Position numbers and translations under genes: made by a program. Positions 8,133 through 30,626 of a DNA stretch of 64,000 nt are shown in pieces (the first letter of the stretch is position 1; every line of letters starts with the position of its first letter). The DNA is from Octopus sinensis (lineage: Eukaryota): the NCBI RefSeq assembly GCF_006345805.1, contig NC_043004.1, forward strand, positions 83,018,001 through 83,082,000, read 5' to 3'. The notes beneath the pieces are model-generated. The model saw only the letters and a program-made list of their open reading frames with translations, was not told the DNA's origin and did not search any database.

Positions 8133-9185
8133 AGACGAATTAAACACCAGTCCTCTGTATATCAGATATGAAAAATATACTCCAGACGTTATTCCTGAAA
8201 CAACTTGTAGTACGTAGCCTTTCTGATTGACTAAGTCAGTTGCTATTTCATATGCTATAATACACCAGTTAAAAGTGAATATAAATGCCATCAACCCATT
8301 AGAAAACTGAAATAGTGAGTTAATTCTTTTCGTCAATTGACTCAGTCTAGTATGATGGTTAATTATTTGTGTTAATATTTCATTAAGATTTCTATGTCTC
8401 TCAGAGATTCTTCTGTTCGAATGTTGAATTTCCTGTATGGACTTTTTAAGTTTATCTGATAAATAATTAAATTCTTTTGTGAATATTGATGTTAATGCTT
8501 CATATAATCTGTCAGGTGACAAAATAAGGATAGCATTCCATATATCTGTTGAGAAATTTAATATCAACATAAACCCAAAAAACTTATTTTCTCGTGTTAA
8601 TGGAAATCCTAACACTTCCAAAAAATATTCCGGATCAACTAAAGTTGCCGGTAAAATAATTTGGCATATAGCGGCTATGACAAAATAAACTTGTATATAA
8701 ATTAAAACAGTACATGCTCCAAATTTGTTGTACCGTTTCATCAATATATTATTTGGACATATTGGAATATAAGTTTGGAAATCATCGATTAATCCGTAGA
8801 TGTGATTCCGTTTCCAGATAACGGTTAGTGATAATAAAGTTGGAAAAACCTTCGTCATGAGCATGTACAATTCCCCTAATATATATTTATTCTTGTTTGA
8901 TGTATAACGTGCAACAATAAGCCATATCAAGCGTACAATATCAATTGAGGAGATTAAATAGAGTAAAGGGAGACATAAACACAGAATTCGTGTTTTCACA
9001 CCAGATCTTTTCCACATTTCTAAACTTATTTTAGAAGGAATAGAAGATACAACTGCAAGACGTCTGATTTTCTCCAGGTATTCATTGAAGGTGCTCTCAC
9101 TTACGGGTTTTGGAGAGTTGTCGTCCATTCTTATATAAACCGAATGTGATTCAGATATTTTGGTGCCTGATTCATATGATTCCAT
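8133..9185 (-). CDS. GRL variable exon V1 (TM1-TM6, 351 aa, intact)
   Basis: ORF 8106..9185 has six hydrophobic segments and the GR-type KEFNYLSDKL...IINHHTRLSQLTKRINSLF segment; ends FNSS|GTAAGT in phase 0; acceptor TTTGCATTCAG at 9240. Confidence 0.85.
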
Positions 9186-10160
9186 GAGTTACTTAGATTT
9201 TGATATAGTTGCAAAAAATATTAGTATAATCATATTCACCTGAATGCAAAACTGAACAGAATATTAATATGTATATCTTTGATTGGGGTTTCTCGCTTGC
9301 TGTTAGTTTCTTTGTAATCGTTTAACAACCCACTTTAATGCATTCATTAATATATTATAACATGTGATTGGGTATACACTTATCATAAAATATAACCACA
9401 CCCCTTATTGTAACATATACACTGTATGCAGTCAATTTCTATTAACTACTGTTTACTCTAAAGTGAAACTGATTATGGTATCGATATTATCTGTTAGTAA
9501 TTGCTTGTCTGATGAATAATGGATCTTTCTGGAAATGAAAGAGTTAACGTTAATGCTGTCGAGCCATACTGACTCATAAGTACCGGTTTCCAGGATTTAT
9601 GGCGTATATATATTCCCTAACTGGACGTGACGTTGCAGGGTTACACACTTTTGCCAACTGAACTGACTGAGAGATATGAAATGAGGTGTTTTGTTGAAGT
9701 AAACAATGCCAACATACGAATAAAATTATCCTCTGACAGTTCCTACCTTTTCCTTCCCCTCGTTCCGTATATATATATATGTATTTCTATACTACCCACA
9801 AGGGGCTAAACATAGAGAGGACAAACAAAGACAGACAAAGAGATTAACTTGATTACATCGACCCCAGTGCGTAACTGGTACTTAATTTATCGACCCCGAA
9901 AGGATAAAAGGCAAAGTCGACCTCGGCGGAATTTGAACTCAGAACGTAGCGGCGGTCGAAATACGGGTACGCACTTCGCCCGACGTGATAACGGTTCTAC
10001 CAGCTCTCCTTATATATATATATATGTATATATATGGAGGGGGTGCGTATATATATATATATGTGTGTGTGTGTGTGTGGTGTGTGTGTGTGTGTGTGTG
10101 TGTGTGTGTGTGTTAATAAATATTGACACATATGAATATTTAAAAAAGATATTTATAAGG

Positions 10161-10436
10161 TATACTGTTTTGTCTGGGGAAAGTCATTTTCTTTTTGTGC
10201 CTTTTAGTGTAACACACGCACCAGTAAAATTACCACTTTTTTCTTATTTTTATTTTCCTAAATTTTCGTTGCGTCTTGCAACCTTTTGAATCGTCTTGAC
10301 TCTCTTGAAAAGTTTGCAAGACGCAACGAAAAGTTTAAGAAAATAAAAATAAGGAATAAGTGGAAATTTCACCGGTGAGTGTGTTACATTATAAGACACA
10401 AAACGAAAATGACTCTCCCCAGACTCAACAGAATAT
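10161..10436. repeat. Imperfect palindrome / MITE-like foldback
   Basis: TTTTCGTTGCGTCTTGCAA vs TTGCAAGACGCAACGAAAA; GTCTGGGGAAAGTCATTTTC vs GAAAATGACTCTCCCCAGAC. Confidence 0.75.
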
Positions 10437-11353
10437 GCTTCAACACAAGAACTCAAATAAAGAATCTTGCAAACCAAATCGAAAACGAATTATAAGATAT
10501 AAATAAATACATAAATATATATAAAAATGCATGTAAACAAAACCCATGTGGGATACATATGGAAGGAAGGGTGAGGAAAAGAGAAACGTAATATAAATAG
10601 ATTTGTTCAAGAATATAACGCGTCTCTTGGTCCACGAATCGATACCACACTGTTACATTCGTCAGTCTGCCACCCTAAACACTAATCCACGCGCCTCCAA
10701 ATTTCAGCAAATGCATTTAATATAAAGATAATACATACATGCATTAGTCTAGACATGTACTCACACATTTCTCTCATAATAAAAATTATGTTAATCTATG
10801 TATAGTTATTTGCAATAATTTGCTTCCTTCTCAATTTCCAATGTACCAAATCCTTCTCGAACCATACATCTCTCTAATATGTTCTCAATTTATGGGACGA
10901 AATGAAAAAGGCTATGGACGTTTTTATGTACGTGTGTTAAAAATCGGGAGCGAGTGAGTGAGACAGTGACAAAGCAAGAGAGTGAATTACAGACACAACA
11001 TGAGAGTGATGTTTTGTGTATAAACTACCTTATTTATTTCAGTAATGTCGTTGTTCAGCGTGGAATATTGGCATACTAAACGTTAGTAAAGCCAGCAACG
11101 TAGTGACGCAAGTCATGTATAACATATAGTACACGGATGAGATCCAAAGATCCTCAGTCTAGAAGACACTGAATAGTACAGTTCTATACTTAAGAGACGA
11201 GGAATTATGTACATTATTTACATTTGACAGGTATTTGTGCTCATCTTGTTTGTTGTTATATACCCTCCAGCCTTCATCATCATCATCATCATCATCATCA
11301 TCATCATTATCATTATCATTATTATTATTATTATTATTATTATTATTATTATT

Positions 11354-28570: not shown

Positions 28571-28597
28571 TATGTATGTATATATATATATATATAT

Positions 28598-29161
28598 ATT
28601 AGAGGTAAAACCACCATTAGGCAAATCAAACAGTGAAAAATATAAACCAAAACATAGAAATAAAATTAATGAATATAATATACTAAATATATAAAAAAGT
28701 TCAAAATTTAAATTATTTGAATTTAAAGTTAAAAATTTTAAATTATTAATTTATATTTATAAATTTATAAATATATATATAAATATATGTATATATATAC
28801 ATTTTTTATTTATTTTATATTTATTTTTTTAAAAATTAAATATATATAACTATCAAAAAGTATTGAAAAGTTTAATATAAGATAAAAAGTAAAAAATAAA
28901 AATACTTTTTATCTTATATTAAACTTTTTAATACTTTTTGATAGTTATATATATTTAATTTAGAAAAATAAATAAATATATATATATATATAAATTATAA
29001 ATATAAATTAATAATTAAAAATTTTTAACTTTAAATTTAAATAATTTAAATTTTGAAATTTTTTAAATATGTCTTGTATATTATATTAATTAATTTTATT
29101 TCTATGTTTTGCTTTATATTTTTCACTGTTTGATTTGCCTAATGGTGGGTTTATCTCTAAT
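28598..29161. repeat. AT-rich foldback palindrome (about 270-bp arms)
   Basis: CCACCATTAGGCAAATCAAACAGTGAAAAATAT on the left mirrors ATATTTTTCACTGTTTGATTTGCCTAATGGTGG on the right; symmetry continues to a centre near 28880. Confidence 0.85.
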
Positions 29162-29570
29162 TTATATTTATACTGTAAAATTAGATTTAATCCTAAATCT
29201 AATTTTTCCCTGTAAGTTTGGACTTACTCCCTAATATTATTATATATATATATATATATATATATTCACACGGACACTAGCACACATACACACAAACACG
29301 TGTGTGTTTTTGTCATGGATTTTACAAAGATTTTCATCTACCAAATCTACGCACAAGGAATTGGTCAGCATGAGGCTACAGTATAAAAAAAAACTTGACC
29401 AATGCACCTCAGTATGAGAGTGAAGCTGAAATCACGTTATCGCTGAGCGGGATACTCAACAAAACAGACATGTCTGCGAATATCCTTAAATATACATGCT
29501 TTATAAAATAGAGAAGATATTTAATCATTAAAAAATTACTCATTAGAAAATACTACAAAGTAATACTTAC

Positions 29571-30626
29571 ACTGTCATTAATCTTAATTCCTGAATAGAG
29601 CCGACATACACAAAATGTTGCACTCATTGCAGCAGGAGCAATTTGGAATGTATAGCTTTTTGCAGTGACTAGGTTATTTGAAAGTTCATATGCTATCGCA
29701 CAGAGGTTTATCATGTGCAGAAATAAAATCACAGCAGTGAGAAACTGAAATACCTTATTTGCAATATTTAATAATCGACAGAGTTTTGCATGTTGGTTAA
29801 TTAGTTCAATTAATCCTTCACTGCGATTTGCATGTTCTTCGAGCATATGTTTCCGATTACCTTGTTGGTGTATGAAGTTTCTGAATATCTCTGACAAATA
29901 ATTATATTCATCAATGAAAAATGATTCAAATATACCTTCTATAGCTATATAAGGAAGATAAATAAATAGGCTGAATATAGAGGATAGAAAACTTATGATC
30001 AACATAAGCAAATATAAATTGCTGTCTCTTAATACAGGGAAAGTTAAGATGTCCAGTAAATAAAGGGGGTCCTGGAAAACTACGGGAAAAATAAGTTGAA
30101 ATACAAAACAGGACAGAAAATTTAAACAGACATTAGATTTGAGGTAACGCATTCCAAATTTGTAGTATTTCTCCATAAATCTTTCATCCTGATGTAGTGG
30201 TACATAGTCTTCATATTCCTGGAGTAAGTGATTTATATCATCTCGTTTCCAGATAATGATTAGAGCAGTTGTAGTTGAGAACAATTTTATAAACATAACC
30301 AGAAATTTTGCTAAAGCATCTCCACCATCATTTGATAAAAGATGTTCTACTATAAACCACGCAATACGGAAATTATCAATTAATGGAACCAAATATAATC
30401 CAAGAAGACAGAGATACAACATTCGTGTTTTCAGGGTAGAATTTTTCCAGATTTCTAGGTTAAATTTTGAAGGAACATAGCGTACAATTGCTACATGTTT
30501 CAATTTCTGTATATATTCATTTAGACTGGTTTCCTTTACTGCTTTTAGCAATAGAGAGGTGTTTTCCATATCTATACTACATGAACTTGTCTTCCACGTT
30601 TTGTTTACTTCATTTGGTGATTCCAT
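29571..30626 (-). CDS. GRL variable exon V4 (TM1-TM6, 352 aa, intact)
   Basis: ORF 29553..30626 is paralogous to V1 (WK.S..KTR.L, IIWKR, DP.Y.L..L.FP, EYNYLS, LINQHAKLCRLL); ends INDS|GTAAGT in phase 0; acceptor TTTACAAG at 30650. Confidence 0.85.

Follow-up and report, generated by a model that had tools for sequence, protein, structure and literature searches.

How might an animal make complete chemoreceptors from a locus in which each long exon stops short of the last membrane helix? The question is posed by a 64,000-nucleotide stretch of the Octopus sinensis genome (the window, C8:83018001-83082000 of the 2.72-Gb assembly; numbers with the prefix C8 are contig positions, plain numbers are positions in the window). 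In this stretch, an earlier note had pointed to four minus-strand exons of gustatory-receptor-like (GRL) type, V1 to V4, and had proposed that they are alternative exons spliced to one shared set of constant exons. We use V exon for a long first exon coding for the N-terminus and transmembrane helices (TM) 1 to 6, and tail for the three short constant 3' exons. The four V exons of the window proved to be the distal end of a long array within the gene LOC118764605 (C8:82886326-83048626, minus strand, 162 kb). We put the probability that the V-exon array and a single tail form this one gene, with the V exons serving as alternative first exons, at about 80%. This reading draws on the architecture, the fit of the splice phases, the lack of private tails, the selection on the reading frames and the fold, all documented below, together with database models that join V exons to the tail twice in O. 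sinensis and once in Octopus bimaculoides.

The shared tail and the gene models that use it

Stop-to-stop reading frames on the minus strand recovered V1, V2, V3 and V4 where the earlier note had placed them, and V1 and V4 are intact open reading frames of 351 and 352 codons. The constant exons lie left of position 1, as had been supposed, at a greater distance than a neighbouring intron would imply: constant exon 2 (C2) is found 126,449 bp to the left of the window, and the whole tail of C2, C3 and C4 (Table 1) about 126-132 kb to the left. The three exons have canonical AG/GT sites, and the V/C2, C2/C3 and C3/C4 junctions are all in phase 0, so that any V exon reads into the tail in frame.

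Database models make this junction with different bodies. In RefSeq, isoform X1 (XP_036361414.1, 421 amino acids) consists of Vj and the tail, with an implied intron of 98,835 nt, and isoform X2 (XP_036361415.1, 403 amino acids) consists of V4 of the window and the same tail, joined at ...GIKINDS/AHQLVDH... across an implied intron of 156,018 nt; V4 is identical to the N-terminal 333 residues of X2. A protein search with the tail only showed that the two isoforms differ in their bodies and have the 70-residue tail in common. In O. bimaculoides, XP_052825885.1 (LOC106880487 isoform X1) joins the orthologue of V4 to the same tail, the bodies being about 78% identical and the tails identical at 68 of 70 residues. 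Different bodies with one common TM7, as the earlier note had envisaged, are found in the O. sinensis annotation, and the tail carries TM7a and TM7b. The modelled start of isoform X2 is the second in-frame methionine of V4 (30569), 19 codons after the first ATG (30626); it may simply be where the transcript evidence starts.

Such shared-tail isoforms could also be annotation artefacts of homology chaining over huge gaps, in which case the V exons, if transcribed, would give tail-less six-helix products. Modelled introns of 99 and 156 kb would suit this explanation, as would the older (2015) O. bimaculoides annotation, which has the tail as an orphan 60-residue protein; the tail-only protein search returned this orphan and no partial transcript across a V-to-tail junction. 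The join of V4 to the tail was, however, made independently in the annotations of the two species, and the O. bimaculoides model is truncated at its 5' end, as evidence-limited models often are. The NCBI pipeline reportedly retains extra isoforms only when they have transcript support. The phase and the splice sites fit. The tail is 97% conserved between the species, so that something must use it, yet its only body exons are those of the array. A receptor of this fold without TM7 would also be a receptor without a pore helix. We consider an annotation artefact highly improbable.

Absence of private tails

Tail exons were searched for in 224 kb (C8:82858001-83082000) by tBLASTn (E<=100) with the last 70 residues of XP_036361414.1 as query, and by hidden Markov models (HMMs) of tail exons 2, 3 and 4 run on the six-frame translation. 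Exactly three tail sets were found by tBLASTn and HMMs, namely the constant exons of the locus on the minus strand, the tail of the neighbouring GRL-A locus and that of a plus-strand gene at C8:82864770-82866975. The real tail exons scored 36-68 bits and nothing else in the six frames exceeded about 10.6 bits. Neither search found a tail exon in window positions 1-30626 or between any V exons, in agreement with the earlier search by eye, and a separate set of exons 2 to 4 after each V exon was likewise not found in the 224 kb. Across the genome, tail exon 3 has about ten copies, all of them on C8, and inside the array only the shared copy is present. The plus-strand GRL tail at C8:82864770-82866975 has no detected first exon nearby.

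If each V exon were instead a separate gene, its own tail exons would have to be so divergent as to go undetected. At 17-30 residues, tail exons are short enough that divergence past recognition is conceivable. The HMMs nevertheless recovered all three real tail sets well above everything else, and the genome-wide search with exon 3 still picks up family members at just 46-48% identity. Moreover, the four exons from Vk to Vn lie only 2.1-3.2 kb from one another, which leaves no room for three private exons and their introns each, and the duplication units cease to be homologous some 200 nt beyond the donor. We give the idea of separate genes almost no weight.

A seven-residue match, IYAMNLE, recurs between the young V exons and was considered as a leftover of tail exon 2, but was rejected, as the sequence there is a (TA)n microsatellite with an ATG after it and lacks exon context. 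A search of the genome with the Pfam 7tm_7 family yielded one irrelevant match only, the exons being too divergent for a family-profile route.

The array of first exons

DNA and protein searches of the genome, together with tBLASTn over the same 224 kb, revealed about 20 minus-strand V exons over 153 kb (C8:82895525 to 83048626). Twelve of them are intact, each with its own ATG and 351-362 codons, and eight are defective. The proposal of four alternative exons in the window therefore holds for V1 and V4, whereas V2 and V3 are pseudo-exons and belong to a much larger array than had been noted. All 12 intact V exons have their donor at the same aligned phase-0 codon boundary (GTAAGT in ten, GTAAAT in Va and GTAAGA in Ve), a regularity that chance does not explain. 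The phase-0 GTAAGT donor described as common to V1, V3, V4 and the first exon of GRL-A is indeed present in the three V exons; GRL-A exon 1 shares the phase-0 boundary, but its donor is GCAAGT.

Homology among the duplication units extends from about 640 nt upstream of the ATG through about 200 nt beyond the donor. In a maximum-likelihood tree, the V exons fall into three clades arranged in genomic order, a proximal clade of Va-Vf, a middle clade of Vi-Vn with V1, and the distal V4, and the clades are deeply split, with 26-45% identity between one another. The correspondence of clades and genomic order fits tandem duplication with birth-and-death turnover, and the array probably grew in this way, as a unit of about 2 kb was copied in tandem. 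The nearest relatives of V3 are in the proximal Vd/Ve clade; V3 itself is frameshifted, and the V3-like half exon immediately outside the left edge of the window is a paralogue of it that is dead as well. The neighbours Vk and Vl (C8:83000661-83004905) share 96% protein identity, with a synonymous rate (dS) of 0.004 and a nonsynonymous rate (dN) of 0.018, giving a ratio of about 4 on very few changes; the pair points to a very recent duplication or gene conversion, and possibly to diversifying change. About 10 kb downstream of constant exon 4, at C8:82875754-82876701 on the minus strand, a distant V-like exon of 23% identity is intact and has the donor GTAAGT; no tail exons were detectable within 17 kb downstream of it.

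One might suppose that only the annotated V4 and Vj are functional and that the other intact V exons, V1 included, are unexpressed duplicates of exon 1 alone. We found no database protein for V1 or for the remaining unannotated intact V exons, eight of the approximately 20 V elements are clearly dead, and dN/dS in the young clade is 0.7-0.8, near neutral. Missing annotation is weak evidence, however, as chemoreceptor transcripts are typically rare. The frames of 351-362 codons and their donors have been kept across 17-24% nucleotide divergence; when random substitutions were simulated at this divergence (V1 against Vj or Vk, with substitutions only and indels ignored), the 351-codon frame stayed open in fewer than 0.3% of trials per lineage, with P<0.001 per lineage, which argues that the intact frames and donors have been maintained by selection. 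Pairwise dN/dS among the intact V exons is 0.25-0.8, except for Vk/Vl at 4.09, which have almost no synonymous changes, and for saturated pairs with GRL-A. Among the deeply diverged Va-Vf, at 28-45% identity, every exon is intact and dN/dS is 0.25-0.55. Contigs assembled from other sequencing runs also contain V exons akin to V1, V4 and Vd that run straight into the same GTAAGT (P0002, P0006, P0007). An array with just two working first exons seems improbable to us.

Protein family and fold

The V exons and the tail each code for a part of one recognisable fold. V1 alone matches Pfam 7tm_6 at positions 5-220 of 313 (E 1.4e-7), and V1, V4 and the C-terminal open-reading-frame piece of V3 match this family only within positions 5-246 of 313, indicating that the last, C-terminal helix is missing. 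V4 joined to the tail (P0003) matches Pfam 7tm_7 over positions 31-365 of 370 with 35.1 bits (curated cut-off 26.6) and 7tm_6 with 36.5 bits, isoform X1 (P0001) matches 7tm_7 with 33.8 bits, and the tail alone covers 7tm_7 positions 315-365.

An AlphaFold2 model of V4 with the tail reached a predicted local distance difference test score (pLDDT) of 75.7 and a predicted template modelling score (pTM) of 0.71. The top 19 Foldseek matches in the PDB were all insect odorant receptor (OR), Orco or gustatory receptor (GR) channels, at TM-scores of 0.44-0.71. In the model, the junction between variable and constant parts (residues 333/334) falls within helix TM6, at its cytoplasmic end. We take the two helices of the constant part, 351-374 and 381-402, to be TM7a and TM7b, the mean pLDDT of the final 40 or so residues being about 40-61. 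The TM7 motif of the family, TYhhhhhQF, has four conserved positions (PMC7746228). Constant exon 4 has TYSIVAYQT and the GRL-A tail has TYVIVVLQT, so that three of the four positions (T, Y and Q) are kept and F is replaced by T. The product of LOC118764605 is a member of the gustatory-receptor-like (insect chemoreceptor / 7TM ion channel) superfamily, and its isoforms are presumably ligand-gated channels.

Choice of the first exon

How would one V exon be selected from such an array? A transcript would begin at one V exon, whose GTAAGT donor would then splice to the first real downstream acceptor, that of constant exon 2. The V exons in between would leave as part of the intron, because in an alternative-promoter model they have no acceptor. 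The three short exons would supply the last part of TM6 together with TM7a and TM7b, the pore helix, and the locus would produce up to about 12 receptor subunits that differ in the ligand-facing body and are identical in TM7. Each V exon would have its own promoter, and the ten intact V exons besides V4 and Vj are presumably used as well.

A candidate for such a promoter was found in the V1 clade, where every exon has a conserved non-coding element of about 75 nt located 220-330 nt upstream of the ATG. Its 27-nt core shows 0-1 differences among V1, Vi, Vk, Vl, Vm and Vn, and three in Vj. The block is 82-84% identical, compared with about 40-70% for the adjoining upstream sequence and about 76% for the exon. 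By its conservation and position, it could be a promoter or regulatory element duplicated along with each exon, which fits the alternative-promoter model. Two further copies on the minus strand have no V exon at the usual 220-330 nt, one at C8:83003030 between Vl and Vk and the other at C8:82966106, about 1.5 kb upstream of Vg; both may have been left by duplication units that were copied only in part.

The same architecture could instead be read by mutually exclusive splicing, as in Dscam, with a single upstream promoter and leader exon for all V exons. In V1, Vk, Vl and Vn, a pyrimidine tract followed by TGCATTCAG/G, which resembles an acceptor, stands about 55 nt before the ATG, and the RefSeq start of X2 at the second methionine of V4 could mean a spliced 5' end. 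However, the acceptor-like segment is deleted upstream of Vj, the exon of isoform X1, and of Vi, which makes a common leader less likely. The element 220-330 nt upstream is conserved separately in each V1-clade exon, the insect precedents use first exons (PMC6175461), and no common leader exon was identified. We regard mutually exclusive splicing as unlikely and prefer a separate promoter for each V exon.

All isoforms share TM7a and the pore-helix segment, so that they might co-assemble into mixed tetramers. By analogy with vertebrate neurons at their protocadherin clusters, the chemosensory cells of the octopus could each pick one or a few V exons by promoter choice, and mixed tetramers could then form a combinatorial receptor code from one locus. 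We offer this as a speculation with rather low odds; if it were true, the neighbouring loci of apparently the same layout would multiply the combinatorial effect.

Neighbouring GRL loci and repeats

GRL-A (LOC118764606) lies further right in the window. The three short 3' exons that had been ascribed to it were all found, and their exon and phase structure is identical to that of C2-C4, but GRL-A is not a simple gene with one body because its tail is common to a second first exon. The model XP_036361416.1 (LOC118764606) ends with the GRL-A tail exons and takes its body from C8:83087112-83088122 (window-equivalent 69112-70122, past the right edge). GRL-A exon 1 is 43% identical to this body and lies inside the first intron of the model, about 13 kb downstream of its first exon. 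An O. bimaculoides protein (P0010) joins the orthologue of GRL-A exon 1 to the same tail at KLHQN/IHDIV. Since both first exons are joined to the GRL-A tail in models, GRL-A is a locus with two first exons. Its exon 1 has the donor AAT/GCAAGT (55840-55846, minus strand) where every intact V exon of the array has GT; the intron could be a working GC-AG intron, or the donor could have weakened recently.

Other loci on C8 look alike. V-like exons at C8:82464396, 82484650 and 82488339 (minus strand) lie upstream of a single LOC118764609 tail (exon 3 at C8:82458463, minus strand), and this region is probably a third GRL locus with multiple first exons. LOC118764607 and LOC118764608 have models named isoform X3, and a pair of V-like exons lies at C8:83396503 and 83400978. 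All detected exons of the GRL family fall within about 1 Mb of C8, apart from one weak fragment on contig C9569.

Repeats intervene in the window. A reverse-transcriptase element (44610-47811, minus strand) sits in the last GRL-A intron and explains the 7.5-kb gap before GRL-A tail exon 4; a closely related fragment (12350-12892, minus strand) lies between V1 and V2. A Penelope-like retroelement (35191-37536, minus strand) with reverse transcriptase and a GIY-YIG endonuclease domain separates V4 from the GRL-A tail, and a second, weak GIY-YIG match occurs at 61483-62058.

Table 1. Exons and elements of the octopus GRL array, its tail and GRL-A. Single C8 numbers for Va-Vf, Vk, Vl and Vn are the lowest exon coordinates; slashes mark exon borders.
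Feature	Position	Strand	Details
Constant exon C2	C8:82891484-82891552	-	69 nt, ttag/GCT...AAG/gttcgt, phase 0
Constant exon C3	C8:82889868-82889957	-	90 nt, phase 0
Constant exon C4	C8:82886326-82886379	-	51 nt + TAG, phase 0
Va, intact	C8:82895525	-	donor GTAAAT
Vb, intact	C8:82899685	-	donor GTAAGT
Vc, intact	C8:82913309	-	donor GTAAGT
Vd, intact	C8:82923765	-	donor GTAAGT
Degenerate V copy	C8:82931748-82932264	-	
Ve, intact	C8:82939490	-	donor GTAAGA
Vf, intact	C8:82958372	-	donor GTAAGT
Vg, degenerate	C8:82962320-82964556	-	
Vh, fragment	C8:82979895-82980265	-	
Vi	C8:82981486	-	N-terminus disrupted
Vj, intact	C8:82990388-82991440	-	donor GTAAGT; used in RefSeq isoform X1
Vk, intact	C8:83000661	-	donor GTAAGT
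Vl, intact	C8:83003853	-	donor GTAAGT
Vm	C8:83005957	-	two frameshifts
Vn, intact	C8:83008032	-	donor GTAAGT
V3-like half exon	C8:83016264-83016770 (window-equivalent -1736 to -1230)	-	just left of window; donor GTAAGT changed to ATTAAT
V1, intact alternative first exon	8133..9185	-	ATG 9185, 351 codons, phase-0 donor GTAAGT just below 8133
Conserved non-coding element of V1, candidate promoter/regulatory element	9441..9510	-	about 255-325 nt upstream of V1 ATG
V2, pseudo-exon	15761..16541	-	frameshift at about 16206-16234; stops after about residue 268 at microsatellite/repeat; no donor
V3, pseudo-exon	21715..22796	-	single frameshift at about 22158-22191; phase-0 GTAAGT kept at 21715
V4, intact, most distal first exon	29571..30626	-	352 codons, ATG 30626, GTAAGT below 29571
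GRL-A tail exon 4 (LOC118764606)	42339..42404	-	IFGSLFTYVIVVLQTKRPTDS + stop
GRL-A tail exon 3 (LOC118764606)	49868..49957	-	90 nt, LTLFLDRLNTTPSGISVGGFFVIRPSSILT
GRL-A tail exon 2 (LOC118764606)	52962..53030	-	69 nt, IHDIVEDLYAMNFKGLSTETRMK, phase 0-0
GRL-A first exon (LOC118764606)	55846..56856	-	337 codons, phase-0 GC donor GCAAGT below 55846

Discussion

Several observations weigh against the reading of LOC118764605 as one gene with alternative first exons. The joins of V exons to the tail rest on computational RefSeq models, annotated isoforms exist for only two of the 12 intact V exons, and a RefSeq isoform for V1 was looked for and not found. At up to 156 kb, the introns are very long for such a locus. 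The conserved upstream element was detected only in the V1 clade, and not upstream of Va-Vf, V3 or V4. The dN/dS values of 0.7-0.8 among the younger copies are high, and the V1-Vj pair alone is not significantly below 1; loose constraint of this kind is presumably usual for chemoreceptors.

Tandem variable first exons with one constant 3' set, and cis-splicing past the intervening variable exons, are known from the vertebrate clustered protocadherins and UGT1A. The octopus locus resembles them in its tandem variable first exons, its single constant 3' set and possibly a conserved element for each variable exon. The proteins are unrelated, in contrast, and the upstream element of the octopus has been shown for one V clade only. 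We regard the likeness to a protocadherin-style choice as an analogy only; stochastic choice of a single promoter, looping by CTCF and enhancers, and the coding of cell identity would be conjecture for the octopus.

The insect chemoreceptor genes offer a closer comparison. The Drosophila loci Gr28b, Gr39a and Gr23a were reportedly described by Clyne in 2000 and Robertson in 2003 as loci with tandem alternative first exons. Insect GR/OR loci combine tandem long first exons with three shared short exons; in Blattella germanica, Gr60a-m, the largest gene of this kind, encodes 13 receptors, and other such genes include pseudogenic isoforms (PMC6175461). The octopus locus belongs to the same superfamily and has the same arrangement of arrayed first exons up to TM6 and three shared short exons with TM7; its last introns are also in phase 0, a likeness of phase and layout rather than a position-by-position equivalence. 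Some first exons are pseudogenic in both, and the numbers of intact first exons are close (12 in the octopus and 13 in BgerGr60). Unlike the insect loci, the octopus locus is found in a cephalopod mollusc, extends over 162 kb, has introns as long as 156 kb, and contains three deep V clades at 26-45% identity; its splices have so far been supported by computational models only.

The earlier note had called this layout convergent on insect Gr loci, which is too strong, as a long first exon followed by three short phase-0 3' exons is the ancestral structure of the superfamily (PMC7746228, PMC6175461). Because animal GRLs are considered to have had these 3' introns ancestrally (PMC7746228), the octopus and the insects would have exploited an inherited structure in parallel rather than having converged from scratch.

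Gustatory-receptor-like genes of non-arthropod animals are said to have been described by Robertson and by Saina in 2015. The octopus locus shares with the non-arthropod GRL genes the seven-helix fold, the TM7 motif and the conserved 3' introns (Benton 2020, PMC7746228). In the literature that we searched, with Robertson 2015 lying outside the search, we found no alternative-first-exon GRL locus outside arthropods, no cephalopod GRL and no paper on LOC118764605. The locus thus represents a known gene layout in a new phylum at a very large scale, present in part in RefSeq models and apparently undiscussed in the literature.

For annotation, the locus carries a warning, in that orphan six-helix open reading frames of 350 residues and an orphan tail protein of 60 residues belong together in a single gene. 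About ten tail sets serve at least 35 body exons within about 1 Mb of one chromosome, and with few tail sets serving many body exons, gene counts understate the GRL repertoire of the octopus. Cephalopod chemosensation has so far been explained mainly by chemotactile receptors derived from nicotinic receptors, and the locus provides a defined set of candidate ionotropic receptors for the suckers, lips and olfactory organ. The layout of many bodies and one pore helix, familiar from the taste and smell receptors of insects, extends to a cephalopod at a much larger genomic scale, and probably to several neighbouring loci as well.

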